Below, piece after piece: positions 7,616 to 54,340 of a stretch of DNA of 64,000 nucleotides; position 1 is the stretch's first letter; every line of letters starts with the position of its first letter. The position numbers were made by a program, and so were the translations under genes. The notes below the pieces were generated by a model that saw nothing but the letters and a program-made list of their open reading frames with translations, did no database searches and was not told the DNA's origin. Source of the stretch: Podarcis filfolensis (lineage: Eukaryota); the NCBI GenBank assembly GCA_964270895.1, contig OZ185441.1, one strand, 5' to 3'.

Positions 7616-7985
7616 TGTTATGTACTGAGTTGAATAGGATCCAAACTGCAGCAGTCTGATTGGTCCTAGAACAATAGGATCCAAAAGGAAGCAGTCTGAT
7701 TGGTCCTAGAACAATAGGATTCAGAATGCAGCAGTCTGATTGGTCCTAGAACAATGCAGCAGTATGATTGGTTGGCAGGAACCACCCAATCATGCTCCAG
7801 ATAGAAGTGAATCCACAACCTGATTGGCTTACAGTAGAATTCCGGAATTAACCAATCATGTGCAGCCCATTGTGTAAATAATGTATATAAAGCAGATACC
7901 TTGAGGGGACTTTCATTCATTCCTCCTCACCACTATGAGCTGAATAAAGAGCATGAAATCACTTTGCGACTCTGAGTATATTTCA
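7616..7985 (+). repeat. 5' LTR of Gypsy element
   Basis: tgttatg...tatttca; TATATAAA at 7884-7891; AATAAA at 7943-7948. Differs from the 3' LTR at only 7851 and 7870. Confidence 0.97.
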
Positions 7986-7986
7986 C

Positions 7987-8004
7987 TGGCGACGAAGGTG
8001 GGAT
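7987..8004 (+). promoter_or_regulatory. Primer-binding site, tRNA-Ser(GCT)-like
   Basis: TGGCGACGAAGGTGGGAT begins 1 nt after the LTR. It is complementary to the 3' end (..ATCCCACCTTCGTCGCCA) recalled for vertebrate tRNA-Ser-GCT. Confidence 0.8.
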
Positions 8005-8110
8005 CCCGCTGAGCTGACTGCCACACACAGCACCGCAGCACCGCCACCTGCCGCACCGCTGCCTCGCACTGTGTATCCAGGCTTCAGCTCCGGGACACAA
8101 GGAACTCAGA

Positions 8111-10195: not shown

Positions 10196-10236
10196 CGGAG
10201 CCCCTACACAGACTCCTGGACAAGCGGGCCCCTTGG

Positions 10237-12186: not shown

Positions 12187-12196
12187 AGGGGAGGGG
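12185..12196 (+). promoter_or_regulatory. Polypurine tract
   Basis: AGAGGGGAGGGG directly abuts the TG of the 3' LTR. Confidence 0.9.
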
Positions 12197-12566
12197 TGTT
12201 ATGTACTGAGTTGAATAGGATCCAAACTGCAGCAGTCTGATTGGTCCTAGAACAATAGGATCCAAAAGGAAGCAGTCTGATTGGTCCTAGAACAATAGGA
12301 TTCAGAATGCAGCAGTCTGATTGGTCCTAGAACAATGCAGCAGTATGATTGGTTGGCAGGAACCACCCAATCATGCTCCAGATAGAAGTGAATCCACAAC
12401 CTGATTGGCTTACAGTAGAATTCCGGAATTAGCCAATCATGTGCAGCCCACTGTGTAAATAATGTATATAAAGCAGATACCTTGAGGGGACTTTCATTCA
12501 TTCCTCCTCACCACTATGAGCTGAATAAAGAGCATGAAATCACTTTGCGACTCTGAGTATATTTCA
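12197..12566 (+). repeat. 3' LTR of Gypsy element
   Basis: Direct repeat of 7616-7985 (368/370 identical). Confidence 0.97.
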
Positions 12567-14870
12567 GATATGAAGCTTCAAAATTAAAAAAAAAAATGTC
12601 TGTCCCCACCCCCCGATCCTAGCATTGCATTTTGGGACCTTTCATAAGTCTACCTTCTCAACATTAAGCAGATTGTGACATCACAGCTCACAGTTATTTG
12701 GCCTGATCCAGCATGGGTAGCGCATGCTTTAAAAAGGCTTCCCATATCTCAGTTAGGGGTGTGTGGGTGTGTACTTTCTCTAGGCGACTTGCTGCATCTA
12801 GCACAGTGCTGGTGCTGGGGTAGCCTATATGGCCTTCCAGCTGTTGCTGAATGGGAACTCCCAGTATCCCTGACCATTGGTCATGTTAGCTGGAGCTGAT
12901 GGGAGCAGAGGTCCAACAGCAATGGGTGTGGGTGGGTGTGCACAGACCAGGTGCCTATGATCTAGCACATGGAGTTCCATGGGGATCCCAGAACTGCAGT
13001 GAAATAGCAATGTGCTATTTGCTACATTAAGGGGTTTTTGGACTGAAAAGCCATATATAACAGCAACAACATCTATTTGGTGGAGAGCTGCACACAGACA
13101 CACTTGCACAGCAGAACTCATTATTGTGTGCTCATATCTTTGGACAGAAGGAACTCGATTCTTGGGAGAAGACAACACCATATTATAAACCTAGTTTTTG
13201 AAAAGCTTAGTGAAGACAATGTTTGTTATTGTTTCTAATGCATCTTTTAAATTTTTAACTCCATGAGTTTGATATCTAGAAAAGTAGCCCGTGTCAATAA
13301 TTTGGGAGTAAAATTCCATTAAAACCACAGGCTGTTATTCTGGAGCAGGGGTGAGAGGACCTGTCACCCTCCAGACTCCATCGCTCATCAGCTCCAGAAT
13401 AATGGGAGTTGGAGGGCAATGAGTTTCGTCAGCTGTACTCCAGAGCAATAGATGGTTCCTTAAAAGTTTATGTAGGATTCTTCAAGTAACAAAGGAAACA
13501 CTTTTCTACTCATCTTCCCCTACAATGCATAGCCCAAGGAGCAAACTTGCTATTTTTACATAATGGATTTTCAGTTCAGATGAGGCAATGAGGATGACCA
13601 GGAAGCGAGGCTTGTGCACCCTGGCAATGCTCCAGAATCTTCTGCCGCACACAAGGGTTCAACAGCAGACATGAATGCTCTGTGACAGACAACAGATAAA
13701 GTGCTCCTTGAAACAAAGTCTGGAAGCCGCTGGCCTGTAATGTAGGCCTATTCCTGACCCTAAAAAAAAACCATCCTAAAAATCTGGAAATAAGCATCCA
13801 AACTACCAGCATTTGCCATTCATAATGATAGAAGCAAAACTGCTATTGAAAGTTATTCCTTGCAATGGGTACTGTGTATTTCTGCATTGGTGGGACTTAA
13901 AGTAAAAGGCCCTTCGGCCTGTCAAATAAATTGTAAATCTCTTTCATTTCTTTTTACTCTGTTTTGCTAGACATTTTCAATTTGTGCCATCTGCTGGTCA
14001 AACTATATCACTACAGTTGGCAAAGGCGTTTCGGTTAGAACGCTCCCCCGCCCCTGTGACTTAATTTTGCCAAATCACATCACTGGAATTGCTTGCATAT
14101 CATCATGGCTTGACACAGAGCTATTGCAAATTATAGCAATACCACATATCTCACTAACAATGAAATGAATACACTTTTAGATCATAGAGGTTACAGAAAT
14201 GAAGAAAGCAACCATAGTTTTCCTTCCTAAAGGCTGCTTCAGTAAAGCTCATACCTAATGTCTAGTATTATCAACTTGCTACTCCTGTTTTAGACTTAGC
14301 CTTTATAACCCTGTTTTAATACCACACTGACACTTTTACATCAAGAATATCCTTCTTCAGTCTAAAAACCAGATCGTCCCAACAGTGAATGATTTTGGGT
14401 TTTGAGTTTTCAAATGTTTATTCCCCCAAGTGGATAAGCACTAAATATCATGTGCATATTACTCATGTGTTTAGACCAGCAGTGGTGAACTCCCATCAGT
14501 GCCATCTGGAATGGCCAAACCACCAGATATTATGTGAGCTGGACTTGAGCACCAGTATCAGGAGAATCACATGTTTCCCACCCTGGTTTACTCTCTGAAT
14601 ATCCTTTCCTATTTTCTCCTTAAGCAAAGAGCTGATCATCCCCTAACTTTTGCGGTTTTCCCCAGCTGCAATTCTGCACAGCCCACAATGTTTTTCCATT
14701 GATTGACATCAGCAGTGGCAGTTTGCATCTGCTTCTGGCTGAGGAACTCTTTGTACCTTGATGCATTAATGGCTTGTGGCTGAGGAGCCTTTTCGCTTGC
14801 CACAACTTTTCATAAGTCATCATCTGTCATCTTTGTGTGGTGTCCCCCCACCCCACCCCGTTCCTAATCC

Positions 14871-15326
14871 TTAGCCTTTTAATGCTGGCAATAATTCAGG
14901 TACTGACTTGGAACAGAGCTCTCTGTCTGCAGAGAAAGTTTGACGCTTGGCTCTCGTTTCGGTGTCTATTTTAGTCATACCATTTTCTTCACTTGTGGAT
15001 GCATCTCCATCAAGATTTCCTGCTACTTTGTAATCCCTCTGAACAGCAAGATAATCGTCTCTGGGCTTTTTTCTTGTATTGTCACACATGCTGCCTTTTA
15101 AATGGACACCAAGAATATTCTGTTTTGGAGCATCACCCGGCTGCTCTTTGTTCTTATGGTCTTCTGGAATTGTGGGGCATGCATTGATGGAAGATGCACA
15201 ATGGTAATAACCAGAAATCTGCTTCTTTTCATGCATAGCGCAGAGATCAATTTGCCTTAAGATCTCTGTGCCAAAAGGACTGTCTTCATACTTTCTATAG
15301 AGATCTTCCTGAATTTTTGTAAAGCC
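14871..15326 (-). pseudogene. AKAP7: AKAP7-like exon ending the 2H domain plus a non-canonical C-terminal extension
   Basis: Acceptor ccaatgttttag|ggc (phase 0). Reads GFTKIQEDLYRKYEDSPFGTEILRQIDLCAMHEKKQISGYYHCASSI, then stays open to TAA at 14871. Possible internal donor aatg|gtatga at 14981. Confidence 0.85.
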
Positions 15327-15619
15327 CTAAAACATTGGAAAATACATTGTGTATTACACACTGTGTTTTTGAAACCTTTTTTTTTTTAAGAAACAGATTT
15401 TGGTTTTTTTAATCAGCTGCCCAAAGACTACAATGCTTTAAATGTGGTGTTTGATCATTCTTATAGTGCAAATAAGTAGCTAACAGAATCTCAATATTTT
15501 TGCTATCAATATTTTTTACTTTGTGTGTTGTGTCATTTCACTTTCCAGGAACGACTTGCTTTTTCTGTCCAGACATTTGATACTGTGGGCATGAAAAGGA
15601 TGATTTGATAACATTTATA

Positions 15620-15861
15620 CAGTGGTACCTCGGGTTAAGTACTTAATTCGTTCCGGAGGTCCGTTCTTAACCTGAAACTGTTCTTAACCTGAAGCACCAC
15701 TTTAGCTAATGGGGCCTCTTGCTGCTGCCGTGCCGCCGGAGCACAATTTCTGTTCTCATCCTGAAGCAAAGTTCTTAACCTGAAGCACTATTTCTGGGTT
15801 AGCGGAGTCTGTAACCTGAAGCGTATGTAACCTGAAGCGTATGTAACCCGAGGTACCACTG
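15620..15861. mobile_element. Same MITE family
   Basis: TIR cagtggtacctcgggtta..taacccgaggtaccactg; TA TSD. Confidence 0.9.
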
Positions 15862-15894
15862 TACTGCTTTTGTATGCAATGCCTTTGAGTAAGA

Positions 15895-15921
15895 ACACAC
15901 ACACACACACACACACACACA
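15895..15921. repeat. (CA)n microsatellite
   Basis: Read directly; similar tracts are (CA)n at 60471-60498, (GACA)n at 4217-4242 and (TA)n at 35529-35546. Confidence 0.9.
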
Positions 15922-17086
15922 GCCATTGTTTGGACCCTAGTTTTACTAGCTACAGCTTGGTAGAACCCCAACACCTTATGACTTTCCTAAAATCAACAAA
16001 CTAGATTTGAGATTGAAAAATCAACAGGTACGTACATAACTGTCATCCAAGGAAAATCCACAACTTATTTTATCTTTCTCAGGTGCAAAACCCTCAATGC
16101 ATAATTCTACCTCTATAAACTTTTTAGCAATTTTGTTTAACTATGTTGCAAAACTTCTCAACAATAGTCTTGGATCACTTTCAGCAGGATCTTTTTTCCT
16201 CATAGCTTCCCCCACCCCCACCCCCCATTGTTCAGTTTCATTTGTTTCACAACTGCATTCTTCCACATTAAATAACACTATCCTATCTTGCTGTTTGCAC
16301 TACGCAATGGTCCTCTTTATTCAGGAAGAACATATATTAAAGTGAACCAACGACTCAGGAGTGTACTGTAGAAGGTGCCTATTCTGTGGAGTGGGGGGGG
16401 GGGAGAAGAAACAAGTGCTGAGAGTTACGTCTTTTGGATGACTGATTAACACCAAGAGTAAATTTGGAAGATGGATATTACAGCAGCCGCAATGTGCAAA
16501 ATGAAATGTCAAAGTAAAACACCTCTTAATAAATATCCTCTTCTGCCACATATTAATGCAAAAAACACTCTCATTGAGTCACTGTAATCTAGACTTCCTG
16601 TTCAGTGATCTTTGTCATTTTCTAATTGTAAAAGCATAATAACTTCTCACCTCTCACGCTTCTGTTCTCTAGTCAAGTTCTTTAATTATGGGCTCAAATA
16701 CAACAAGGTCTAGAGAACTTCATATGATATGAGTATGGTAATTGTACTTTGAATTTGCAAAAGCTTCCAACCCATCCCGCAACAAGGATGAGACGACGCA
16801 CACTGAATCCCAACCAGTTCCAATAGGGCTTGAGGGTTATGGAGTCCTTCACTGTAGCATAAATACATGTCCCTGCAACAAACTTCCCATGAAAATATTT
16901 CAACTGCTATTACAGCTGTACAGGGAGATATAGAATTTGGAGAGAGAAAGGGGCAGGCACATCTGTAAAAAGTTTTACAAGTAATAAAATGTAATACAAA
17001 CAAGATTCAGCCCCATAATAACCTCATGGCAATGAATGTTGAGTGACAGAAAGGGGGAGGGGGGCTGAAAACTGGATGAGTGGGAG

Positions 17087-17257
17087 CAGTGCTTTTTTTC
17101 CTGGGGGGACACAGGGGTACCCCTAAGCATTTTGTGAAACTTTGTACTTTTGTCCATTTACTGTATTTATTTTTCCTGATTTGAACTATAAAATGGTTTT
17201 CTTGAGTCAAAATGAGAGTACCCCCAAACTTTTTTTTTTTAGGAGAAAAAAGCACTG
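17087..17257. mobile_element. hAT-type MITE (cagtgctttt family)
   Basis: TIR cagtgcttt/aaagcactg; homologous to the 19539 and 33233 copies. Confidence 0.8.
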
Positions 17258-17627
17258 GGAGGAAGAATAGAATGGAGTGGCTGAAACAAAGAAAAACACA
17301 GGCATATATAAAGGGTAGAAAGAACCATCTTGCTGTCTCGAAAGGTCACTTCCTGGTTCATACTGACACAGCTATTTTTTAAATTTTCACCAGGGATATG
17401 AGAGAGACAGAGAAAGCTCACACTGCCCATAGAAATCAATGGCAAAATCCAAGATTTTAAGATGGACGATGACATGGGTATTTTGTGACATAGTGAGAGC
17501 TGCTTCAGTTTCTCCTTGTATGGTCCACTTCCTAAATATAGATACAGTATTGGGATCCCTACACTGGTCAGAAATGCCCCATGGGAACAGGTTATCAGAC
17601 AACATGGACTATCATTCTAACTAATTA

Positions 17628-17900
17628 GAGCCAGTGTGGTGTAGTGGTTAAGAGCGGTAGACTCGTAATCTGGTGAACAGGGTTCGTGTCTCTACTCTTC
17701 TACATGCAGCTGCTGGGCTAGTCACACTTCTCTGAAGTCTGGGCTAGTCACACTTCTTTGAAGTCTCTCAGCCCCACTCACCTCATAGAGTGTTTGTTGT
17801 GGGGGAGGAAGGGAAAGGAGAATGTTAGCCGCTTTGAGACTCCTTCGGGTAGTGATAAAGCAGGATATCAAATCCAAACTCCTCCACCTCCTCCTCCTTC
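17628..17900 (+). mobile_element. tRNA-derived SINE (Squam3-like)
   Basis: A-box-like gtggtgtagtggtt and B-box-like gggttcgtgtc; 3' tail ..gcaggatatcaaatccaaac followed by a CT-rich repeat. Confidence 0.7.
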
Positions 17901-18357
17901 TAATTTCAGCAGTTTTCATATAGCACTAAAAACACATATTTGGAATAAGCATCAACCCTATCACTTTGTTAGATAAGGCTACCTGATGCAGCTTATTCCA
18001 TTTATTTAGTGTGTACATTGCTAAAAGGGGTGTGAGAGAGACAGAAAATGGCAAATTATTAAGCATAATTGGCAGATATGCTAAAAAGATTCAGCCAAGC
18101 CACTAGTGCACAATTGCTCATTGGGTCTAAATAAGGCGTTGATATCACACTTGGCCTGCCTTCTATAATCTTTAATTACATGATCACATTTTTACAGAGC
18201 TCGCAGTTAATGCTTGCAGAAGTGCATAATTTAGAGGGGATCAAATGCTAATCTTTTTTTAGATGCCAAATGAGTCCTTAATCTTTATTCGATGACAATT
18301 TAGTCCTTTAACTGTTATACTTCTTGATTACTCTTACCACGGAATACCAGTGTATAA

Positions 18358-18407
18358 ATTTATTATTATTATTATTATTAGTAGTAGTAGTAGTAGTAGT
18401 AGTAGTA
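18358..18407. repeat. Compound microsatellite (TAT)n(TAG)n
   Basis: Read directly from the sequence. Confidence 0.9.
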
Positions 18408-18451
18408 TTTCTTTTTCAAAGGGAGAAGATCCTAGAGCTATGTCCAGCAGA

Positions 18452-19040
18452 TGTGATGGGACATCTTCCTCTTCCTCCCCCCTCGCCCTGCAGGCTCTCA
18501 TGTGCTCCTCAAGTCTGCTCCTAGGGGTAATCCTTTAACCCACCAGGAACAGATTTTTTGGGGGGTGGGGGGTTACGCAGGGATGCGGAGAAGAAGGGAA
18601 AATATTATGCAACTAAACTGACATTAGGTTCAGATATCATGATACCATTAGATTGTAAGAAAAACACTGGGGTCTAATTCGAATAGTAGAGTGCTTGGTA
18701 TTTGGTGGGTGGGGCTTGTGTATTTTGCTCCAGAATCAGCTCCTCCCTTCAGTGTGTGTTCAGTTAAAACTGTCAGTTAAGAGGGACCAACTGCCTCTTC
18801 TTGTTTCTTGCCTCAGACTTGTCTCAGGGTACTGTTTTAGTTTCTCTCAGACATCATGTTATTTTGCTACAGTTTTCTCTCAGTTTATTATTAAAACTTG
18901 TTTATGTTTATGTGAACCACTTGCTTTTCTCAAAGAAAAAGAAACTCTGCTGAACAATGGTGGAATATCCTTAACTTGCCTGAATGAGGTGATATTCCCA
19001 ATTTGCCAGGAGGACTGATTTTGTTAATCATGCCACAACA
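18452..19040 (+). mobile_element. Probable solo LTR
   Basis: TG..CA termini (tgtgatgg..ccacaaca) with a 4-bp CAGA duplication at 18448-18451 and 19041-19044; LTR-like composition. Confidence 0.5.
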
Positions 19041-19538
19041 CAGATATCACCCCTAGACATCCAACCATTTCTGTATAATTGCTGAATTTAAACAAGTACT
19101 TAAGTGAGGCTCTGAAATAACCAGGGAAAATGTAATGTACAACCTGGTGGGAAAGTACAGCCAGCAGATGGCATCAGAATAGCTACTACAATGCTGTGTC
19201 TGTAGAGTCATATGCATATCCCTTTTCCCCTTTTATTATCTCATATTCAGCTTCTTTGCAAAGCAACCAAAATATTTCATTCTAGTACCGCTTTCCTGTG
19301 CATTTTTTATCCATCAAAACAGGGAATTTACTTCAAAATGATGCTTGATGCAGCACCACAGCATATCTGGCCAAATTGATCCAGGCTCCAGCTTAACATA
19401 TCCTCTAGTACATCTACCACCTAACTTCAAACATTTTGGCCGAGCCTGACCTAGAATGAACTGGATCAATATTGTGCTTCAAAAAGTCTGCAGGAAGAAA
19501 GTCTCTCTCAACCCTGGTGAGCACAGGTCTCCTAAGGA

Positions 19539-19716
19539 CAGTGCTTTTCTTCTGGGGGGGACGCAGGTGTACGCATACCCCTAAACATTTTGTGAATCTT
19601 TGTACTTTTGTCCATTTACTGTATTTAATTTTCCCGATTTGCACTATAAAATGGTGATTTTCTTGAGTCGAAATGAGAGTACCCCTAAACAATTTTTTTG
19701 GGGGGGTAAAGCACTG
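19539..19716. mobile_element. hAT-type MITE (cagtgctttt family)
   Basis: TIRs; degenerate 8-bp TSD cctaagga/cttaagaa. Confidence 0.82.
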
Positions 19717-21196
19717 CTTAAGAATGTAGGTTAAGTACTACTTCAACTGATATAACAAAGTTGCTTTGACAATGTGGCCAGTGCTGGTATGGCTATTTTG
19801 CAACCTAGGCCAGGCTAACTTCTTGTACACATGCCCCAAATTGTTAGCTTCTATTTTCAAAAGCAGATGTCTTGTAGAAAACAATGAAAAACACAAAACT
19901 ATATAACCAGAACTAATCCTTATAAAATTGTGCCCCTCAAAGGTCAGTACTGCACCCCTTTGAAGTCTGCACCCTAGACGGCTGCCTCATCGGTCTAATG
20001 ATAGCACCAACCCTGAATGTAGCTCCAAAACTTGCAACTATTTTTTAAAAGAGAGAGAGAGAGAGAGCATTTCTATGTAAGAAAATGTATAGGAAAACAC
20101 AGATCATTAGGATTTTCTTTTTCTTTCCCGAGTAAACATGCAATACACCTGTGCAAGGACTGTGGACAAATGCACTTCCCAGCATTTTTGTATGTAGCAG
20201 AAAGAAGTGCAAAAATTGACACATGGTTCTAACTCATTTTTTCACATCAAAAATTACACCATCTAAGGTGGCCATTATCACTTCTTAATGTTGTTCTATT
20301 AAGTTCAGCAGGACTCCTCGTGAATAAAGGCAGGATAAGGGAATCAAGGGCAGACAAACAAAGACATGTGTTTCATTATATTAGATAAGAGTCCTGAATC
20401 AGAATATGAACAATTCCAATTCCATAGAGGGCTGAGATTTATGTGATGGGGCTGCTCAGCACTTAGAATGACATATTTATGTCCCTTTTTTCAAAACATA
20501 AAACACTCTGAGCTTCTCATTTGATTGAGGAAGTGGCGTAGGAAAGAAGGTCCAGCTATTTCTTCCCACATGGTTTATTTAAATAGCTCAAGCTCCAAAG
20601 CTGTTGTTTGCAACCGTGTTTTCTCCCTCCTGGGCAAATAGCAACTTTGGGGAAGAGGATTTGAACTGGGAAACCTACACAGGAGGAATGACTTGCTTGC
20701 ACTGCCCCCATAACCACTTCTGTAGCAAGGTTCATGCTAACTGCATCCCCCCCCCACCCCATGTGTTTGAGGTGGAGACAGGCCCATTTGTATAAGGTGT
20801 GTGTGTGCAACCCTAAGACAAAGACTGTGACATGTTTGTTCTATCCCAGAGAAACGGAGCTAAGAACTCAAACACATACACTGAGGCAAAGTATAGGAAT
20901 GAGGGATGGATCCCAGCATAGTGCAAGCAAATGGCTTATGCAACTGACTTGATGCAGGGGTGCTGCGATAGCCCCCAGTGCTACTATATCAACACTAGGA
21001 GGGGAATCCGAGGAAATTATCTTCATCAAAGGGGGAGGAAGGAAGCCAGGCATGGCCCACCCTGAGATATAGAGTGGATGAGGTTTGAGAGGCTGCCAGG
21101 GCAGTGGATTAACATTTGGCCCAGCCTCTGCTTGATCACAACATTGAGGGAACAGGTTGGGAAAAGAATAAGGCATCATTAAAAGTCCAAGAGAAT

Positions 21197-21553
21197 GGGA
21201 TGCAGGTGGCGCTGTGGGTTAAACCACAGAGCCTAGGACTTGCCGATCAGAAGGTTGGTGGTTCAAATCCCCGCAACCGGGTGAGCTCCCGTTGCTTGGT
21301 CCTAGCTCATGCCAACCCAGCAGTTCGAAAGCACATCAAAGTGCAAGTAGATAAATAGGTACCGCTCTGGCGGGAAGGTAAACGGCGTTTCCGTGTGCTG
21401 CTCTGGTTCGCCAGAAGTGGCTTAGTCATGCTGGCCACATGACCCGAAAGCTGTATGCCGGCTCCCTCGGCCAATAAAGTGAGATGAGCGCCGCTACCCC
21501 AGAGTCGGTCACGACTGGACCTAATGGTCAGGGGTCCCTTTACTTTTACCTTT
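21197..21553 (+). mobile_element. Sauria SINE
   Basis: Head gggatgcaggtggcgctgtgggttaaacc, conserved body and (acctt/acttt) tail; degenerate flanking duplication. Confidence 0.92.
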
Positions 21554-23316
21554 AAAGGTCCTAGAAATAAGGTCTACCTTTTACAGGAGAGTGTTTTGTT
21601 CAGAAACACATTTTTGCAGTGTCATTCTTCCAATGAAGGAACACTTTGTATCGTTTGCATTTATTATCTTCCCATCAGCCTTGCTACTGAGTGCATTTCA
21701 GCTGTGTGCCCAACATTATCTACTTAATGGAGATTTACAAGACAAAACAAAACAAAATAAACCATTAGCTCAACATCACTCATTCCTATCCTCCTGCATT
21801 TCTCCCTAGACAACAGAAATATTGTCACCCTCAGCCTTAGAGTAAATATCTTTATAAATAAGTTCTGCTATTTCCAAGCTGAATGAGAGACATCAAATAT
21901 CTGAAGAAATACTTCATACCTGACTGGCAGAAGCTCATGGTCAGGGAACGCTTTCTTCCACTATTAAAGCATTCACTTCACGTCCTGAGAGTGTATCATT
22001 ATTGTTTCCTTCTGCTTATTATATTGACCTCATAAAAACACACAGCTATTCCAGGAAACAAGGAAGACAGCATTTGAGCAGGGAAAACTTAATCTAATCA
22101 GAGCCACGTTTTTACTTTAATTGTAAAGCAATAAAACCCAACCAAATCCTATATCCTGCTGCAGTTAAAGGTTAGATCAGCATATCATGTATTTATACTG
22201 CAAAGTCCCAGAAGCCTTGAATGCTACCTGACATAAATCCTGCAGTCAGCTGAACATTCCCCAGAACCTCTTTTGCTCCTTTGGTGGAAACAGCTCAGGG
22301 CTGCATTTCCATGCCACTGATGTAAGCAAAGGCAGTAAAAGCAAAACTGCAGTTTTGAATCTCAAATCACTTTATTCTCAAGTAATCCTACTGATTTACT
22401 ATGGAGTAAATAGTTTGCAGGCTGCAGTTTATACATACATGAAATGGTTACCCTACGGCCTATATAAAGTTCTTTCCTTGACTAGAGATAATACCCTATT
22501 TCTCACTCTCACTCCACTTTGTCTGAGGAGCAGGTGGGGACATGGAAGATTCATTTCCTCCTGGGGTCCTTCCATGCTAGGAATTTACTCTCTGCATTTG
22601 TGATTCTGTGTTCACTCTACATGATTATGTCTGCATCAAATTGTTGTTCTGCAGTGTCAGTAGGCACAAATTGTCTCAGCACCACTTCTTCTATCTTTTT
22701 TCAAAGAGGCATGGTTTTGGCATGGCAATGACATTCCGAGCAGCCTAACTCTTCACCTTGGTTTGATTTAGATTTATTGTATGTCTATGCCACTTTTCAT
22801 TCAAATGAATCTCAAAGCGGCTTACAAACTTCCACACACTGTGGCTATTACTTTCTAGTTAGTGCCGCATTAGCAACATGGATGTTCAAATTTTATATAT
22901 AAAAAAAGGGTTAACACACCTTTTGTTTATTTTTACTTTTAAATGCAGACATTGATGTAGTAGCAATTACATGAAGAAGTGTTTTCGTGCAAGTCAAAAA
23001 TATTGATTTTTAAAATGGCATGCTCAGTTGGTGTTATATATGTTAGAAATGCAACATCCGGGATCATTGTAGCTCAAGAGATACCTCTGCTAGTGTTAAA
23101 TTCAATCAGCCAAGAGGGGATGTGTGGAGGTGTTGGTTATCTAGCAGGCAGAGTAGCATGATGTTTGCTGAGGTAGCAGATGCCCTAGATGGGGCTACAC
23201 TTCCTCTGAAAGTGCAGATGTGTAGCTTAGATGTACTTTTTGATCCATTATTGTTGCTTGAGGCTCAAGTGGCTTCAGGGGCATGAAGTGCTTTCCATCA
23301 ATTTTGGCTGGTCACC

Positions 23317-23362
<46 letters not shown>

Positions 23363-23762
23363 TTATTATTTATACCCCAGCCACTCTGGGCAGCTTCCAA
23401 CAAAAGATTAAAAATACATTAAAACATCAGTCATTAAAAATGTCCCTAAACAGGGCTGCCTTCAGATGTCTTCTAAACATCAGTTAGTTATCTATTCCTT
23501 TGACATCTGGTGTTCCACCGGGGGGGGGGGTGCCACTACCAAGAAGGCCCTCTGCCAGGTTCCCTGTAACTTCGCTTCTCGCAGTGAGGGAACTGCCAGA
23601 AGGCTCTCGGCACTGAACCTCAGCGTCTGAGTTGAACGATGGGGGTGGAGACGCTCCTTCAGGTATACTGGGCCGAGGCCATTTCGGGCTTTCAAGGTCA
23701 GCATCAACACTTTGAATTGTGCTCGTAAATGTACTGGGAGCCAATGTAGGTCTTTCAAGGTC
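23317..23762 (-). mobile_element. L2-clade LINE 3' fragment with (TTA)n tail
   Basis: ORF2 C-terminal remnant LHWLPVHLRAQFKVLMLTLKARNGLGPVYLKERL; about 15 TAA units at 23317-23361. Confidence 0.8.
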
Positions 23763-23799
23763 TCTACCTGGACAGGGATGGCCTAACTTTTGTTATATA

Positions 23800-24270
23800 G
23801 GCTCTGGTAACCTCTAGGTCAGATTACTGCAATGTGTTATATGTGGGACTGCTTTTGAGGAGTGCCTCAGAATCTGCAGCTGGTGCAGAGTTCAGCAGCC
23901 AAGTTGCTGACCAGGGCAAGATGGTCTGAACAATCACACTAATTCTTGCATGACTGCATTGGCTCCAATTAGTTCCTGGCCCCAATTCAAAGTGTTGGCT
24001 CTGACCTATAAAGCCTTGTACAGCTTGGACCCCAGTACCTCAAAGAATACCCCTCCACACATGAACCAACCCAGACCCTTCCTTCATCATATGAGGACCT
24101 CCAGGCCTCCTCCAAGGGAAGTGTGGAGGGTGGCAACAGGAGAACAGGCCTCCTCAGAGGGGGTCCCCATTTATGGAATGATCTCCCCAGGGAGGAACAT
24201 CTGGCACCATCACTATCTGTTTTTAGGCTCCAGGCAAAAATATTATTGTTCTCCCAGGCTTCTGGGTCTT
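23800..24270 (+). mobile_element. Older L2-clade LINE fragment
   Basis: gattactgcaatg, ctgcattgg and caattcaaagtgttg correspond to the DYCN / LHW / QFKVL motifs, frameshifted. Confidence 0.65.
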
Positions 24271-24492
24271 AATTTTCTGTTTACCTTTGACTAGAGCAAT
24301 GCTGTTTTGTGGGTGGAGGTCAAGTCAAGTCATGTGAGAGAAGTTCACGATGCCCTGAATAAGATAAAATCTCCTAACAATTTGATATATCATTGTTTTG
24401 CATGCAACATGGTGATCCAAAACATTTTTCAATGTTCTAAAGGAGCAAGGAAACAAAGCACAAAAAGGAGATAATTCCATCTGCTTAATTAT

Positions 24493-24605
24493 CGTACGTC
24501 TCAGTGTGTGTGATTTGGACAGTTTCAGAATCGTCAGGTGGGGTCTGAAATCTTTGCTGCCTCTGATGCCTACATTCATTCTGGTGAATGAGCTCGCCAC
24601 AGCTT
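24493..24605 (-). pseudogene. AKAP7: AKAP7-like exon with second HxT motif (RPHLT)
   Basis: Acceptor ttttattttcatcacttgtctcctag|aa. Reads EAVASSFTRMNVGIRGSKDFRPHLTILKLSKSHTLRRT (113 nt), followed by ataatt instead of a GT donor. Confidence 0.88.
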
Positions 24606-25319
24606 CTAGGAGACAAGTGATGAAAATAAAAGACATTTGTTTACAGGACATTCAGATACAGGCACTCCATAGCAGTTCTAAGCAAAACAGGGAGGCAGAC
24701 TAAACATACCATATGCTCCAATGGTGTACAGTCTCTTCATCTATTTACATACCATGGCAATCTTACTTGGCAAACATGGGAACATTTATTTTAAAGCAAT
24801 TATTGAGGCAAAATGTGAAGAGCTAGTATGAATACCACCTGAACAGCACCATAAGATCAGCCATATCTACAGGCTGTACAGTATACAAGTAAAGAACTGT
24901 TACCTTCAGCTGGTCATTCATTCCAGAGAGCTGGAATGGCAACACCAAAAACCTGGTTTCTAGTATAGGTTAAGTGCACCTCTGGGGGTATCTGGTACTC
25001 CTAGTAGTACCCCAAATGAGAAGTACAATTGCCAGGCAGGAGTATACTGGGCAAGACAGTACCTTTGATATCCTGGTCCCAAGTTGTTTAGAGCTTTAAT
25101 GCTAAAAGCAAGACCTTGAACTGCACTTGGTAGCATATTGTCAGCTGGTGCAGTTCCTCCAGCAGAGGTGTTCTATGGTGTCCATGGGGTGCCCCGTGGA
25201 CCACTGCTGAGGAATCACCAACCTAGATTCAGCATTCTGCACCACCTGCAGCTTCAAGTTAGGCTCAAGGAAGTCCCACATGCAGTGTAGTGCAGTGCAT
25301 TGCAGTAGATTTAATGGAT

Positions 25320-25472
25320 CGGCATTTCAATCCCTTTTCTAATGATCATGGAATTCACCTTTTTTAGTAGCTGTCATGCACTGGCTTGACATCTTCACTG
25401 AGTTGTCCACTAGAACCGCAAGGTCTATTCCTGGTCAGTCACACATCCCTTTAGCAGATATGTGAAATTTTG
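25320..25472 (-). mobile_element. Old CR1 ORF2 fragment
   Basis: Resembles the [19 protein letters not shown] region of the CR1 at 52218. Confidence 0.55.
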
Positions 25473-25766
25473 TGTTCACCACAAGCCAGTATGTGGCCAG
25501 AGTCAGCCACATTAAAACTGAGGGAACACTTGCTTACAGTGTTCTGAGGGAATTTGAAACACAATGGCAACAGTGGAGAGACTTGGATGCCCAAGAAAAG
25601 CAGGGTCTATTTTAATATATGTTAACAGAAATTTAATGAAGCAGGAGAAATCTACTTTTTACACTCAAGTAATCAACATCCATAATTGTATTCAACGTTG
25701 ATATGCTATTTCAGTGTTTCACTGAAATAGTAATCTCATGCAAATTGTGAATGCTTAAATACTAAC

Positions 25767-25924
25767 CCACAATTCTGCTTAGCATTTGCTGTTCATCCTC
25801 TGACATTTTAATATAGATCACTTGGTTGTTAAACTGGCCAATCCCACGAAATGCCACGCTGAAGAGTTTTCCCCGCAACAAAGCTTGCACTTTGGCCTTG
25901 CTGTGCTCCAGAGCAGAAACAGCC
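25767..25924 (-). pseudogene. AKAP7: AKAP7-like exon (intact, 158 nt, phase 2 to 1)
   Basis: Acceptor ttcctttcgtttaaag|g; donor gtgg|gttagt. Reads AVSALEHSKAKVQALLRGKLFSVAFRGIGQFNNQVIYIKMSEDEQQMLSRIV. Confidence 0.88.
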
Positions 25925-27231
25925 CTTTAAACGAAAGGAACACACTCCTAAGTAGGAAATCACCAGCCAAGCAGCTTTGGAAATAAATACTAAGGTCAAG
26001 ACGGCTTTTTGGAACGTCTGCTTGCATAGATGCAAAATATTCATTGCAAAAGCACAAGGTCAGCATAAAAGAACAAAATGGGATAGATCTAGATAAGCTT
26101 TTCCCTGACCGCAATAGGATCCAGCAGAGGTTCCCACTGAAGGAAGCTGGGAAGCAATTCTCACCAATTTCCTCTGTACACATACCCAGCACCACCTTCA
26201 CTGCTACAGAGGATCCCATAATGTTGTGGAGCAGTTTTTCAGAGGGCATGGTGCCAGAAGGGGAAATTGACATAATTCACCTCTTTCTTCCAGTGCAGCA
26301 ACATGTGGGGGGAACTCCTCAGCAGCCTGGATCAGACCTTTTTGGTCCTGAAGGTCACGTGCAGTGGTGGGTGAACATTCACCACAAGCCAGTATGTGGC
26401 CAGAGTCAGCCACATTAAAACTGAGGGAGCCTGCCTGACCAACAGCTGTTTGGTGGGCTAGTGACACATTTTTAATGAGGAGATAAATATGCAGGGAAAA
26501 CTCTTCCCTCACATCTCTCTCTCTCCCCCCCTCTTCCCATTAAAATTATGCCCCTTCCCTTGAATGGAGAAGTCCATCCCTGTGTGTCCATCTGCTCATC
26601 AAAATGCAGGAGATTGTTCTCCTAGGGGTTGTCTAAGCAGTACAGGGACACCGATCTTTACAGGATTGGGAGCACTGCAGGAATGAGGTTAAAACCCCCT
26701 CCCACTGCACATGAAATACTGCCCTCCTTTCCAACTTATGGCTGAGCAGCTGAGCAGCAAAAGGAAGGTGGGGAAGCTCCTCTGGGTTTGGCGGCCTATG
26801 AGTTGCCTGCCTCAGATATTGGAGGTTCATCCATAGATTGCACTGTCCTCTGTTGTCATCCATGCTGACATTGTAGTAAGTGTCCTTGAGTTTGCTTACT
26901 TTCAAGTAAGTATGCTTAGGTCTGATAAGTTACCAAGCATCAAGCACTGAAGAGGCAAGTAAAATGTTTGCTGTATCAAAAGTTCTGCTTGTGTTGAAGG
27001 TAGCAGGCCCTTTAAAAGCCTTAGACAAATAAATTGGGCTTCTTCCTGTATAATATTAAACTGTAATTGTACCACATCATTGTATTACACACAGTTTATT
27101 TACTATTACCCCAGAACAAATCCATTATTCAATTAAATTTAATTGATCGTTATCTGTTACACTGCAAGCCCCACAATAGGTTTCGGTTTTTAGTTGTTCA
27201 TTTCCTGTCAGGCTAAAGCCCCCCAAACATA

Positions 27232-27426
27232 CAGTGGTACCTCAGGTTACAGACGCTTCAGGTTACAGACTCTGCTAACCCAGAAATAGTACCTTGGGTT
27301 AAGAACTTCACTTCAGGCAGCGGGAGGCCCCATTAGCTAAAGTGGTACCTCAGGTTAAGAACAGTTTCAGGTTAAGAACGGACCTCCAGAACAAATTACG
27401 TAAGTTCTTAACCTGAGGTACCACTG
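27232..27426. mobile_element. Same MITE family, internally deleted, opposite orientation
   Basis: TIRs and TA TSD present; 195 bp. Confidence 0.88.
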
Positions 27427-28115
27427 TACATACATTCTAAACCTGAAGCTCAACCAGTTATTTCAATCATACTCCTAAAAATAAATCCTGAGATATAAAA
27501 GATAAACATAAATATTAAATAAGACATTGTTTAAAATAGCTTCTGCAACATAAAACCCTAAGAGATTTCTGAAGGTACCTTGTAGAGCTCCATTTAATTT
27601 TATGAAGTGCTATTCATATAGCAGCGCAAGTTTATTTTTTATAATATATACATTTACAAAAACAGACATATTGATTATTTCCAATGGGTAGGATTGCCCT
27701 CAGGCATAAACTATCAGAAACACTTGTGTGATAAGAGTCTGCTATACCAGGACCCCTCTGAACCAAGGACATTGGGTTGCCTTCCTCCACCTCACAGCAC
27801 TTCAGCCCAGAAGCCCTAGTGGAGCCACAGTCTCCTTTTTAACACTCATCTTGAGGATGAACTGCGCTTCGGAAGCAGAGACTGAGCTCAGCTCACATGG
27901 AGCTTCCATTGCCTACGTCTTGCACAGAGCTGTCCAAGGTAAACATTGGAACCTTGCCTCACATTGCCTCTGTACTGCCAGGTCTATTATTCAAAACAGG
28001 ATAAGACCACTAGCTATCATGTCCTGAATACTTTGAATGTTATGATACAGTTATGAAAATTTCAATTTTATAATAGTCCTCTAGTAACTCACAATAAAAG
28101 TTATTTCACCAACGC

Positions 28116-28254
28116 CAGTCAGTAGAGCACGAGACTCTTGATCTCAGGGTTGTGGGTTTGAGACCCACATTGGGCAAAAGATTCCTGCATTGCAGGGGGT
28201 TCGAAAAGAAGACCCTTGGGGTCCTTCCAACTCTACAGTTCTATGATTCCATGA
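28116..28254 (+). mobile_element. SINE with tRNA-Lys head and CR1-type 3' tail
   Basis: cagtcagtagagcacgagactcttgatctcagggttgtgggtttgagacccacattgggc resembles tRNA-Lys(CTT). The tail ..ccttccaactctacagttctatgattccatga resembles the 3' end of the CR1 at 52218. Confidence 0.8.
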
Positions 28255-28632
28255 CCAGTTCACACATTCAGTCAGTGGAAGGATTTCCACTCATACAGCA
28301 GAAATTGTCTTCCTTTCCTTCTCCCCGGCACCCCCTAAATCTATTCTGTAGTAGATTTGGGGAAGGGGAGGTGTGTGCACAGGGAGAGGGAGGGTTCCAC
28401 TGTGCAAGCAGAAAATCTTACACAGATGAACCTAGTTCGCTGGATAAACTTACTACCTTGGCTGACCCAAGCTAGAAAATGGACAGGGGTAGCACAACCC
28501 TCACAGTGGCATTTGATCCCACGCTGACCATGGTATCCAACACAAACTGTGTTAAGAATAAAAACCATTCATTCATTTAATTGCAAAGCGACATTTTAAG
28601 TTATTTCCTCTCCCTGTTTTAAGTTCCCTTAC

Positions 28633-28768
28633 CTTCTCACATCATATTCTGTCCTCAGATGAGCTACAGTAATCATAAATGCACCGTTTGATCTGGAATT
28701 GGGGCTCTCAAGAGGTCAGGCTCTTTGGTGAATATCAACTCTTGGACATCTTCAATTTTATCTAAAAT
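28633..28768 (-). pseudogene. AKAP7: AKAP7-like exon with first HxT motif, 1-nt deletion
   Basis: Acceptor cctttttatcattag|att; donor gagaag|gtaagg; 136 nt. Reads ILDKIEDVQELIFTKEPDLLRAPIPDQTVHL, then 2 nt (tg), then ITVAHLRTEYDVR in the shifted frame. Confidence 0.88.
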
Positions 28769-31700
28769 CTAATGATAAAAAGGAGGTTTATCAAAAATAA
28801 TGCACCCACTTTGTTAACATTTTAACCCTAGACCCAGAGATAATTTATTTAGCTTCTTAAGACACTTGGGAAGTGTCCCTGTTCAAGATGTGTTCAGTCA
28901 TTCTCCAGGTGCTAGGCAGTGATTTGAAGTTATCTCTCTTAAACCAAAAGCAATTTTTAACATCAAACTGAACTCATTTTGGGGTTCATGAAAACAGACT
29001 GAGATAAGGAACTTTTTTAGGCTCTAAAAATAAAGTTCTTTGGGAGGGGAGGGATTCCGGATTTACCATCCCTAAGAAACACATTATTGATACATAATTC
29101 TTATGTGCAACTTCAGACTTCCAGTTGAGTTGTATCTACTTGACAGAATGCAGAATGCATCTTCACCTTTGCCTGAATCCCAGAATTTCAATAAGATCTT
29201 TCCTTAAATTTTAAATATATAGAGTATATTCTGAGGAAGCAGAAACTGATTGTGCTATTTCTGAACCTCAGCTTCAGTGAGGGCACAAAACTAAGAGAAC
29301 TAAGTATTGGTGTGGTCTTATGCAGCTGCCAATTGTTAACAGACTGGAAAATGGAATAGCATTTCCATAATTAATTGTGTGCTACTTTCTGATTACATGA
29401 AGAAACCGATGCATTTTCCCAAGTGGGAAACTGTGATGGCAAATAAATCCGTTCAGATGACTAAATTTGCCACTTTTAAAGACATTGTTTTTGCTGATCT
29501 GCATGGCCCGTTCTCAGCATTTTCCAAGTCTGTTTCATCTGTATAGCTGAAAAGCTGCAGGAAAAAATATTATGCTTTTTGAAAGAACCTTCAGTAGCAT
29601 TCTTAGGATTAAGATGAATGAATTTAACCAGGAGAGGGAAGTCCCAATGGCCAGAAGCTTAAACATGCTCTGAAAAGAAGTTATGCTGAAATTCTAATTG
29701 GCGTGGTTCAGTTTTGTTCACTTGAAAATGCTCTTATGTTTCTGGGGCACCAAAACCAGACTATAATATTTTCTATACTTCAACAAAAAAAAGTTAAGCA
29801 TATAGACATGCTGTTCAAGGGCATTCAAGTGGCCTGGTGTACAATTGTGTGCTTATATTCCATAACCTTTTTTTATTATTAGTGCTGCAGGCTTGAATTC
29901 TGGGGTGGGAAACCCTTTTTCAGCCTGAGGGATGCATCCCTTTCTGGGGGCCATACATCTGTAGTCAACAGGGCCAGAGGTCAATGTGAGTGGAGTAAAT
30001 GTGAATTTCACACTTGCACAGTAGTCTAGTGTCTACACACACTCACAGCTTACTCTAGCCTTAATTCAGGCAAGCAAGAGGCATTATCAGAGTTCAGACA
30101 AAAACACTCAAGGAGCATGTGAAGCAAGGCCCAGGTGGCAGGGGGAACATCCCAACAGTCAGAGAAAGTAGCCTGGGGGGCACATACAGAACACCCCTAG
30201 GCCTGAGGCTTCCCAGCCCTGCTTAAATTGATGGATTAATCCAGTGGAAACCTTATTGGTCTGGCAAGCCATGTCCTCATCTGTTTCCATCCCTGTGTGC
30301 CCAGAGGAGAAGCATATGCCTGTGCTGCCCAGGGCGGACGCGCTCCTGAGGGGGGGCATGGGAGCGCTCCCGAGGGGGGCGGGGGGCAGAGGGTGCCCTC
30401 CCATGTGCCACAGTTCAGGGTAGGAGAGGGGTGGGGAAGCTGCTGCTCACTGTCCTTCTGCTCTCCGCAGCCGGGTCAGACATGACCCGGCAATGGAGCT
30501 GCTGCGGCCAGGTGTGCTTTGCCACGGCTGAGGTGGGCTGCTCTCTGCTGCCAGGTCAGAAGAGCCGCTGCCACCAGGTGCCAGGTGGGCTGCCCATTCG
30601 CCTGCCATTTTGTCACCCCCCTCAGTCATGACACCCGGGGCGGACCACACACACCACACATCCTTTCCTACGCTTCTGTGTGTGCCAACTTTGATAGGCT
30701 GACATCACCTGACAGCATTGCAAGGAGCTCTGCCAGCCCTGCACTCAGGGCTTATCCTGAGTCTAGGGCTGGCAAAGCTGCATCTTGCAGGTATTGGCTG
30801 CATGACTGAATTCACAACAGTGAACTCAGTCATGCAGCTGATGCAGCCCCCTGACATTTGGGTTTTCCAGATCTTTGTACGAGCATTTTTATTTATTTTT
30901 TATTTGTCTGCAATTGCCGTTTGCTCTGATTCAGCAGCAAAACATGGGTTTCCCAGGGAAAGCACTGGACGAAAAGCAACAACAACCGCTACTTGGACCT
31001 GTGCCCAGAAATGTGGCATAAAAGGGAGTGTGGACGAGCCCATAGTTACAGCAAATTAAGTACTAATTAGGAACGGCTTAATGATTTTTAATTCACATCA
31101 CAGCATTCCAATTATTAAGCCAAATTTGCCTTACCTGGTCATTTGCTATTGGGATTGCAACAAAATAGGCATATCCCTTCTGTGTTTCTTAGATACATTT
31201 TTTTCTTTGTGTTCCTGTTCCTTCTCTTCTGCCTTCATCTTTTGGGTTCCTTCATCTGAACCATGTTGCTACCGATGAGAGAAAATGTCATCTTCATTTT
31301 CATGTTCCTGCTGCTTCTCTGTGGTTGGGTCTTGTGTGTCTTCCTCTCTCATACTACAAGATTGAAGTTTTAGCATATTTGTTAGTTCTGCATGTTGGCT
31401 GTCATCATGCAATTTCTTCTCCATCACCATCACCTCTAATCTTTCTTTTTGCTCTCTTTGTAGCAGGTCTTTGGCCTTGAGCTGCTCTGTGCTGCTCTGG
31501 TTCCACTTATGTTGCTGTTGCAAGTTCTCATTCCCCAGTGATTGATTCATGTTCTTCCATAGAGACTTTGAATCCAACAGATTTGTCTCTTCCCGATCTT
31601 GTTGCTCCTGCTCCTCTTCCATTATTATCCCATTCTTGCACTGGGTTTGCTGCTGGTCTTGTTTTTCATGAGGTGCATCCTTGTACCTGTTATTGCGTTG

Positions 31701-31823
31701 CCAATGGGCATCCTCACAAAGAAGTTCTCGTTACAGATAGGTAGCCGTGTTGGTCTGCCATAGTCAAAACAAAACAAAAATTTCTTCCAGTAGCACCTTA
31801 AAGACCAACTAAGTTAGTTCTTG

Positions 31824-31861
31824 GTATGAGCTTTCGTGTGCATGCACACTTCTTCAGATAC
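31824..31861 (-). ncRNA. Minimal type-I hammerhead ribozyme motif (Penelope-associated)
   Basis: GUAU-CUGAAGA-A-GUGUG catg CACAC-GAAA-GC-UC|AUAC. Both core boxes, helix II, a 4-bp helix I (GUAU/AUAC) and a palindromic AGCU in place of helix III. Confidence 0.65.
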
Positions 31862-31866
31862 ACACT

Positions 31867-31904
31867 GAATCTGAAGAAGTGTGCATGCACACGAAAGCTC
31901 ATAC
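31867..31904 (+). ncRNA. Second minimal hammerhead motif with a mismatch in helix I
   Basis: GAAU-CUGAAGA-A-GUGUG catg CACAC-GAAA-GC-UC|AUAC; helix I pairs at 3 of 4 positions. Confidence 0.5.
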
Positions 31905-33232
31905 CAAGAACTAACTTAGTTGGTCTTTAAGGTGCTACTGGAAGAAATTTTTTTTGTTTGTTTTAAAGAATTTCTCCTTCATGACCATTCCGCTGTACAC
32001 GTGGGTTGCAATTTTACAGACACACATGATACCTCTCCAATTTTGTTCCACTCTTGTTGCACCTCGACTGTTACTGATGGCATATTTTGTCCTTCTTGTA
32101 CCTGTACGGTCATCTTGGGAACCTCTCCTCTTCCATTCCGTTGCTGCTGAACAGTCACTGTCACATACTGTGCTTTATCTCTTTCCCCCTGTTGTCTTTG
32201 TTGACATGAACCATTACAGATGGCATCTTCTTTTCCTCAGTCTGAGTTTGCACTGCTACATCGAAAGTAGGCCTTGCTTTGGCCTATTGTATATTTCCCA
32301 CCCTTGCCTATTGACCTTCACCTGGAAGCTTTGGAGACTTCCCATTCCCATTATTTTCTTCAGACGGTAACAGCTGCAGTTGAGCCATCATCTTTAGTCT
32401 ACAACACCAACACTGTTTCTTCCAAAACGGGTTCCTCCTCCAGAATATTGTCCTTTTTTTCTAGGTCTGAAATCTGCTTTGTAGAAGAGATTGAGAAATG
32501 GACAGATGCTAACACGAAATTCCAAAACCATGAATAAGAGGTAAATAATAATTCCACTTGATTGTAGCACTGTAACACATCCTGAGAAAGGTCTAAGCTC
32601 AAAAAAAAAGTGGCATGAGGACAGTAGGACCATATTGGTTCACATTATTTCTGGTTGAACACAGGTTGTCCAAGTGTCACAAGCATTTGGGGATGCTGAG
32701 AACTGAGTGATAAGAACAAGGAACAGTTTACAGACCCAAGTAGGCAAAACAGCTGCTTAAAGGCAAAACCAATATGGAATGATTAGCACCAGAATATTTG
32801 TATTTGACAGGCATGAATTGCTCTGTGTTATACTGTAAATGGATACAATATATAAGACTTCAGGAAACAGTCTCTGTGATGAAAATCATAGGATGACACT
32901 AGAAAGCTCACAGCGGAGAAAGAAAAATATGCAATTTAGCATGATACTTACTTTCAAATATTTCTCTAATGTCAGCATCAAGGAAGGGATGTTCTGTCAA
33001 ATTCACTTTCTTCTCAGTCCTCAAGCTATATTTTGTATAATTACAATACATACATACAGCACAAAATATTACAAAATATTAGTAAAACCAGCAAATCAAA
33101 TAAATTAGTGAGACCACAAGACTTGCTATGTAGCTAAACATGCTGTATGTGCTGTATTGCTCTAGACCATTTTAGTCTAAGCTCTTGTACACTATCTTTG
33201 TGACATTGGTTGGCATAATAAAGGGATAGATG

Positions 33233-54330: not shown

Positions 54331-54340
54331 TCTCACCCAA
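52295..54340 (-). CDS. CR1 ORF2 reverse transcriptase domain and C-terminus (681 aa, N-terminally truncated)
   Basis: Motifs [57 protein letters not shown]; no internal stop. Confidence 0.93.

Follow-up and report, generated by a model that had tools for sequence, protein, structure and literature searches.

A probable pseudogene of AKAP7L, an ancient vertebrate paralogue of the 2H phosphoesterase AKAP7, in Podarcis filfolensis

Gene identity and exon structure

The DNA analyzed here is a 64,000-nucleotide stretch of contig OZ185441.1 from the Podarcis filfolensis assembly GCA_964270895.1 (referred to as the window; all coordinates are counted from its first letter). From about position 33025 to 14810, its minus strand carries six recognisable exons (2-7) of a gene that codes for a 2H phosphoesterase domain of the AKAP7 type and has many breaks in its reading frame; this gene is very probably a pseudogene of AKAP7L, an ancient vertebrate paralogue of AKAP7, still in its original intron-containing structure. 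An earlier note on this DNA had proposed a decayed, intron-containing gene of the AKAP7 type, and database searches, carried out like all comparisons exon by exon and not on a joined protein model, bear this out. The segment 14874-15326 (minus strand; free of stop codons, as are the next two) matches the AKAP7 central domain in the PDB (E-values 1.7e-11 to 3j4q and 8.8e-11 to 2vfk), and the segments 25765-25926 and 24328-24651 (both minus strand) match the same domain in 5jj2 (E-values 6e-5 and 2e-4, respectively). The Pfam family PF10469 (AKAP7_NLS) is recognised in exon 7 (30.3 bits versus a cut-off of 24.4) and in exon 5 (24.4 bits). TBLASTN searches with the proteins of Rhineura, Hemicordylus and Sceloporus placed exons 2-7 collinearly on the minus strand, with matches at 33021-32956 (exon 2), 32480-31132 (exon 3), 28768-28632 (exon 4), 25926-25771 (exon 5), 24612-24496 (exon 6) and 15326-14765 (exon 7). 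The range of 14871-32508 proposed earlier thus falls inside the gene and is too short at both ends, as exon 2 (33025-32952) and the ancestral stop codon (14812-14810) lie outside it. The closest public match of the window is the P. lilfordi assembly OX395132.1, which aligns with positions 441-26447 at 94-97.6% identity, and a word search with a piece of exon 7 returned a P. lilfordi open reading frame (ORF) as its sole match.

Exon 2 (32952-33025, minus strand as are all exons; …HPFLDADIREIFE) was delimited by TBLASTN with the Hemicordylus protein and by reading the sequence; its acceptor (atatag/, the slash marking the exon boundary here and below) is intact, and its donor (GAAA/GTAAGT, phase 1) is strong. 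The large exon 3 (31135-32476) shows 81% DNA identity to exon 3 of Rhineura and codes for a K/R-rich stretch, Q-rich repeats of the VTVQVQ type, an acidic part and strand one of the 2H domain (PNYFVAIPI); its donor (CAG/GTAAGG) is intact. Exon 4 (28633-28768; ILDKIEDVQELIFTKEPDLLRAPIPDQTVHL / ITVAHLRTEYDVR), with intact splice sites at both ends, holds the His residue of the first HxT motif (CAT, 28681-28679). Exon 5 (25767-25924) likewise has intact splice sites at both ends and an open frame. The frame of exon 6 (24493-24605) is open too, and the second HxT motif, HLT, is unbroken there (CAC at 24540-24538, ACG at 24534-24532). Exon 7 (14810-15326) codes for the final strands of the 2H domain (GFTKIQEDLY…IDLCAM…GYYHC) and an acidic tail that ends at the ancestral TGA (14812-14810). 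The window copy thus retains the marks of its family, i.e. the N-terminal motif PFLDADIREIF, the VTVQVQ repeats and the end of the tail, KMTDDDL followed by the stop codon (KLTDGNL in intact members).

A paralogue clade distinct from canonical AKAP7

A HMMER search with the last exon identified proteins of 575-876 amino acids (aa) that match both the 2H part and the entire acidic tail and are named 'uncharacterized protein LOC…' or 'AKAP7-like' in the source databases; they come from Rhineura, Hemicordylus, Sceloporus, Crocodylus, Lagopus, Macrotis, Tachyglossus and Rhinatrema, and a coelacanth protein (P0018) from the same search also belongs to this family. When the Hemicordylus 2H domain was used in a word search, 85 family members were found, which cover ten squamate genera, turtles, crocodilians, many birds, monotremes, marsupials, caecilians, frogs and sharks; there are no lacertids and no placental mammals among these 85. 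The AKAP7L proteins are 575-990 aa long, with an N-terminal region rich in Q and an extended tail at the C-terminus, and in this respect the earlier suggestion of a little-described paralogue with an enlarged architecture proved correct. Several squamate entries (P0007/P0008 from Heteronotia, P0135 from Gekko, P0078 from Varanus and P0128 from Python) are short fragments, incomplete or joined to transposon domains, and possibly reflect mis-annotation or additional, independent losses.

In a tree of 61 2H domains (calculated with no LENG9 or ASCC1 outgroup and with the window copy not included as a tip) AKAP7L and canonical AKAP7 are parted by a long branch, with a Shimodaira-Hasegawa-like approximate likelihood ratio test (SH-aLRT) support of 100 on each side. 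Heterodontus, Latimeria and Rhinatrema contribute one protein apiece to both clades, which implies that the duplication is older than crown gnathostomes; a gar protein falls into the AKAP7L clade, and a gecko AKAP7 represents squamates in the canonical one. The exons of the window were compared with both clades: exon 4 is 90% identical to AKAP7L versus 36% to canonical AKAP7, exon 5 88% versus 45%, exon 6 76% versus 65% (the latter over only 20 aa), and the 2H part of exon 7 79% versus 55%. The exon boundaries and phases, NDQ/ILD (phase 0), K/R (phase 2), I-A/E (phase 1) and RRx/GF (phase 0), are equal to those of the Crocodylus and Rhineura AKAP7L genes.

Intact orthologues score 120-142 bits to PF10469, and the 2H domain of the Rhineura protein can be aligned over its full length with human AKAP7 gamma (5jj2; E-value 1.3e-52), with both HxT motifs kept; both are invariant in 28 diverse AKAP7L members. 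The RII-binding domain PF10470 was not detected in the intact proteins of Rhineura and Hemicordylus. The analysis of genomic neighborhood revealed no other genes within 10 kb at the Rhineura, Crocodylus and Lagopus loci, and none was recognised in the window. A selection scan in chicken lists 'AKAP7L' between ARHGAP28 and EPB41L3 on GGA2 (PMC10035218), and we infer that this symbol denotes the paralogue clade described here. This gene list is the only mention of AKAP7L found in our literature searches; a paper on the evolution of AKAP7 (PMC3508976) and one on viral phosphodiesterases (PMC10835031) describe no vertebrate paralogue.

Disabling lesions

The lesions lie in exons 3, 4 and 7 and in the donor of intron 6, i.e. 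in three exons and one splice site, just as had been noticed before. They comprise at least five frameshifts, four premature stop codons (three TAG in exon 3 and one TAG in exon 7), a TAA that results from a +1 insertion, and one splice lesion. The ancestral acceptor AG of exon 3 is also gone owing to an 8-bp deletion, but the AG at 32478-32477 is a substitute that preserves the frame, and this loss was therefore left out of the count.

In exon 3, a run of A residues (32454-32460, minus strand as are all lesions below) has lost one base, so that the window reads FRPRKK/GQ… (here the slash marks the shift) versus …KRTIFWRRNPFWKK. Downstream, in-frame TAG codons occupy 32308-32310 and 32284-32286, where Rhineura has CAA and CAG, respectively, and one more base is missing at 32203-32204 (CATGT-CAACAAAG). 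The third frameshift lies within 31715-32006, where 61 nt are left versus 105 in Rhineura. This segment contains a 247-bp insertion of a palindromic, very-high-copy repeat (31718-31964, with no strand assigned), flanked by a TTCTTT duplication, and the frameshift persists when the insertion is removed, as the translation of the empty site yields 'CVSVKLQ' and 'EDAHWQRNNRYKDAPH' in differing frames. The repeat family is of extremely high copy number (contig depth up to about 6e5). In Rfam, the insertion matched just generic hairpins (miRNA precursors), all below threshold, and no hammerhead family was hit at E<=0.01. The third TAG (31269-31271) lies within a 21-nt segment that is absent from Rhineura, and at 31167-31168 the Pro-Asn codons of PNYF, at the very start of the 2H domain, have lost 4 bp.

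In exon 4, the alignment places a 1-bp loss (28674-28675) in the Leu-Thr codons of the first HxT motif. The His residue is kept and the Thr codon has become ATG (CAT-TTATG in the window versus CATCTTACT; in the longer alignment, CAT-TTATGATT versus CATCTTACTATT). Hence of the two HxT regions reported earlier as matching AKAP7 the second is confirmed and the first is damaged. The donor of intron 6 has changed from GT to AT (24491-24492; ACG/ATAATT in the window, AAG/GTGATT in Rhineura and AAG/GTAATT in Crocodylus), and the sole GT near the end of exon 6 lies in a phase that does not suit exon 7, whose acceptor is of phase 0. Exon 7 exhibits a GAG to TAG substitution (14864-14866), 17 codons ahead of the ancestral stop, and an additional A in TTAAAAGG (14871-14880), which is found in the window only, being absent from P. 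lilfordi, and creates the TAA at 14873-14871 that ends a 121-aa ORF. With 4 bp missing at PNYF, 1 bp missing in exon 4 and the intron-6 donor lost, the frame of the 2H domain is not continuous, and the locus of the sequenced animal is unable to encode a 2H enzyme.

Distribution and age of the lesions

Contigs from four public sequencing runs (X3, X4, X8 and X18) were placed on the region 28000-33100; X3 bears the same organism label as the window and comes from another sample and study, and the remaining three represent three further organisms. The states given below are those among the single-nucleotide variants and indels listed. Among RNA sequencing runs, none was found that contains this stretch. 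Position 31717 joins 31965 directly in the contigs of all four runs (both=6), and the 247-bp insertion must therefore be private to the assembly or haplotype of the window. An extra base is present behind 32453 in X4, X8 and X18 and is missing in X3, which confines the poly-A frameshift to one species. The contigs of X3 (30915-31392) and X8 (30915-31717) are free of gaps over the PNYF region, so the 4-bp deletion is common to them, and in the X18 contig every gap letter is accounted for by a 4-bp intronic deletion, from which it follows that the exon-4 frameshift is present in X18. Within the VTVQVQ repeat region, 48 bp (32093-32140) are missing, in frame, from the X4 and X8 contigs. The window differs from all four runs, including X3 with the same label, at 28474, 28819, 29277, 31093, 32196, 32352, 32798 and other positions; either the individual or haplotype that was assembled is distinct from the others, or these single-base differences are assembly errors.

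The independent assembly of P. lilfordi exhibits the identical AT donor lesion (ATG/ATAATT) and the same TAG in exon 7. A word search with a piece of exon 3 gave zero matches. Some lesions are thus common to Podarcis species and older than their split. Others arose lately and are private, namely the poly-A frameshift, the insertion of the repeat and the additional A of exon 7. The lesions listed earlier are real, but two of them, the 247-bp insertion and the poly-A deletion, are not fixed among the relatives. Overall, the pseudogenisation is recent and is shared within Podarcis at least.

Residual constraint and alternative explanations

Several observations weigh against the pseudogene reading, or limit the comparison on which it rests. 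The sequence has decayed only slightly: of the 67 alignment columns that are conserved in at least 95% of the 68 intact family members, only 4 differ in the window (median 1 and maximum 7 among the intact members), and at columns invariant in other sauropsids the window carries 9 unique changes, versus 1-9 in six intact squamates. Exons 5-7 of the window and P. lilfordi differ by 6 synonymous and 5 non-synonymous substitutions (ratio of non-synonymous to synonymous differences per site, pN/pS, 0.22; binomial p 0.015), and their divergence, 1.6%, is half that of the adjacent non-coding DNA, 3.2% (Fisher p 0.007). The low pN/pS and the slow divergence look like continuing constraint, which is unexpected given that the donor was broken already in the common ancestor. 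The signal may reflect chance together with transition bias, or the constraint may have lasted until recently, with the decisive frameshifts younger than the shared lesions. In addition, the variants listed for the runs leave sharing unproven for the TAG codons of exon 3 and, in X3, X4 and X8, for the exon-4 lesion; the comparison of lesions with P. lilfordi spans exons 5-7; and single-copy status was judged from the window locus. On the other hand, the many frameshifts and stop codons of exon 3 suggest a longer period of neutrality, at least in the N-terminal region. As regards that region, the Rhineura gene itself contains an in-frame TGA ahead of the annotated start (L002, about 9983), which severs the conserved N-terminal exons, and its tail (L002, 28400-28700) contains a TAA and several indels, so that its open frame is restricted to the Q-rich region and the 2H domain; the regions flanking the domain therefore seem dispensable in this group.

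Could the loss be very recent or incomplete, with the 2H exons under selection in the genus and some Podarcis still keeping a working enzyme? According to this explanation, which we regard as unlikely though worth keeping in mind, the AT donor and the TAG that trims only 17 residues from the tail, both found in P. lilfordi as well, may be tolerated, and the frameshifts of the window species would be late. The pN/pS of 0.22 in exons 5-7, with a synonymous rate (4.1%) near the intron rate (3.2%), agrees with it, as do the scant amino-acid decay, the demonstrably young poly-A frameshift and repeat insertion, and the example of Rhineura, where the tail is likewise cut short and a TGA lies upstream, but the domain is open. 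However, an AT-AG intron with the donor ATAATT matches neither the U2 nor the U12 consensus, there is no good in-frame substitute donor after exon 6, and the exon-4 frameshift in X18 and the PNYF deletion in X8 demonstrate that the lesions are not limited to one species; moreover, no more than 11 substitutions underlie the selection signal, and the number of synonymous ones is inflated by transition bias.

It is considerably less probable that the locus is an additional, inactivated copy of canonical AKAP7, or of an AKAP7L gene that is still intact at another place in the genome. Our view is limited to this locus, which leaves some room for such a copy, and the absence of a functional second copy is suggested by one indirect sign only, namely that the 85 family matches include no lacertid protein, though ten other squamate genera are represented. 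Against an extra copy, every intron is kept at the orthologous position, which excludes a retrocopy, the exons are 75-90% identical to AKAP7L versus 36-55% to AKAP7, and the lineage-specific exon 3 and tail align with those of Rhineura. A young duplicate of AKAP7, which the note had named as a possible refutation, or a retrocopy of it, is ruled out by the kept introns, the split of the clades in the tree and the identities of the individual exons. Least credible of all is the explanation that the living animal has an intact gene and that errors of assembly or base calling account for the lesions: two of them do lie in homopolymers (the A-runs 32454-32460 and 14877-14880) and the 247-bp insertion is absent from the other runs, but nonsense substitutions, a 4-bp deletion, the GT to AT change in the donor and the altered Thr codon are not of the kind that homopolymers produce, the independent P. 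lilfordi assembly shows the lost donor and the TAG as well, and indel states recur in the contigs of other runs. The long ORFs of transposable elements in the same window are likewise unbroken, among them the indel-free ORF of 2 kb (an uninterrupted 681-aa reverse transcriptase frame at 52298-54340) that had been invoked to argue against general base-calling error.

Other features of the window

The region 7616-12559 is a GC-rich insertion of 4.9 kb that is missing from the orthologous P. lilfordi locus and contains two ORFs, 8018-10192 (725 aa, protease and reverse transcriptase) and 10135-12183 (683 aa, RNase H and integrase); it is a young element similar to Ty3/gypsy elements or endogenous retroviruses, and its pol is apparently intact. 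The 681-aa ORF at 52298-54340 (minus strand), called a CR1 ORF in the earlier note, carries the RVT_1 domain (E-value 7e-35); an endonuclease domain was not detected in it. Two consecutive segments show exact base parity on one strand, 44001-46000 (G and C 469 each, A and T 531 each) and 46001-48000 (435 each and 565 each), which occurs at only 23 of the 62,001 offsets in the window. No inverted repeat accounts for the parity of 44001-48000, which is probably a coincidence.

Predicted function and implications

Gene identity, orthology, the lesions and their sharing across species follow directly from the comparisons; what the ancestral protein did can only be predicted. Intact AKAP7L genes combine the short, conserved PFLxADIREIF motif at the N-terminus, a repetitive region rich in K/R and Q, a C-terminal 2H domain that carries both HxT motifs, and an acidic tail. 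As it lacks the helix that binds the RII subunit of protein kinase A (PKA), it is expected to be an enzyme, not a kinase anchor, and since both HxT motifs are invariant in 28 members, the ancestral protein was presumably an active 2H phosphoesterase. It would have hydrolyzed 2',5'-linked or cyclic phosphodiesters, like AKAP7, and by analogy with AKAP7 it might have cleaved 2',5'-oligoadenylate (2-5A); the link to 2-5A and RNase L keeps the strength of an inference from a homolog, at which the earlier note had put it. In the copy present in the window the frame is broken at least 9 times, once in catalytic motif 1 and once at the first strand of the domain, in addition to the loss of the intron-6 donor. 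Such a loss may have been tolerated because canonical AKAP7 or PDE12 would cover the function.

Loss of a gene in this way is nothing unusual, and the interest of the pseudogene lies in the paralogue family to which it points: a sister of AKAP7 with an intact 2H core, distributed from sharks to marsupials and not described in the literature that we searched. According to the family search, this gene is lacking from placentals, on which all work on OAS-RNase L and AKAP7 is based. If AKAP7L degrades 2-5A, non-placental vertebrates possess an extra regulator of RNase L, and the lineages that lost it, e.g. Podarcis, are natural experiments; Podarcis would have lost one candidate enzyme of the kind able to switch off an antiviral alarm signal. 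AKAP7L also widens the set of candidate cellular ancestors of the phosphodiesterases (PDEs) captured by coronaviruses, toroviruses and rotaviruses. A much bolder scenario, which we consider doubtful, would make AKAP7L a second vertebrate 2H phosphodiesterase, perhaps nuclear and 2-5A-degrading, an ancestral brake of the OAS-RNase L pathway that was lost repeatedly (in placentals and in Podarcis) and a candidate donor lineage of the viral PDEs, with Podarcis as a natural knockout; within this scenario AKAP7L would have gone unstudied because placental mammals lack it.

Comparison with known systems

The central domain of AKAP7 (AKAP18 gamma/delta) is a 2H 2',5'-phosphodiesterase (5jj2 and 2vfk in the PDB; Gusho et al. 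2014, PMC4161237), for which cleavage of 2-5A and restraint of RNase L have been demonstrated (PMC4161237, PMC8406329). Intact AKAP7L proteins align with it over the full domain of 200 aa, including both HxT motifs, and belong to the same family, PF10469. They differ in that the domain is only about 41% identical and has formed a separate clade since before the gnathostome radiation, and in that they have no PF10470 helix and possess instead a Q-rich N-terminal region of 250-650 aa and an acidic tail. The tail encoded in the window aligns to this acidic tail. The genomic setting differs as well: AKAP7 adjoins EPB41L2. In the chicken gene list, AKAP7L stands next to EPB41L3 on GGA2 (PMC10035218). 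The 2H domain of ASCC1 (8tly and 8tuk in the PDB) is a distant relative of the PF10469 type (E-value 1e-9), much more distant than AKAP7 and with another architecture.

The viral 2',5'-PDEs (coronavirus ns2 and the C-terminal domain of rotavirus VP3) are considered descendants of a cellular gene similar to AKAP7 (Goldstein & Elde 2024, PMC10835031) and, according to the literature, belong to the same 2H superfamily as AKAP7L. In searches of PDB sequences, the profiles of AKAP7L and AKAP7 reached no viral PDE structure at E<=10, and a closer relationship of the viral enzymes to AKAP7L is neither supported nor rejected by this comparison.

The closest counterparts of the window copy are the intact AKAP7L genes of Rhineura (LOC133370213), Hemicordylus (LOC128323107), Sceloporus ('AKAP7-like') and Crocodylus (LOC109313944), with which it has in common the exon plan, the N-terminal and tail sequences, and 75-90% identity in each 2H exon. 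In these orthologues the 2H frame is open, whereas the copy in the window has frameshifts, stop codons, a broken donor and a damaged catalytic motif.

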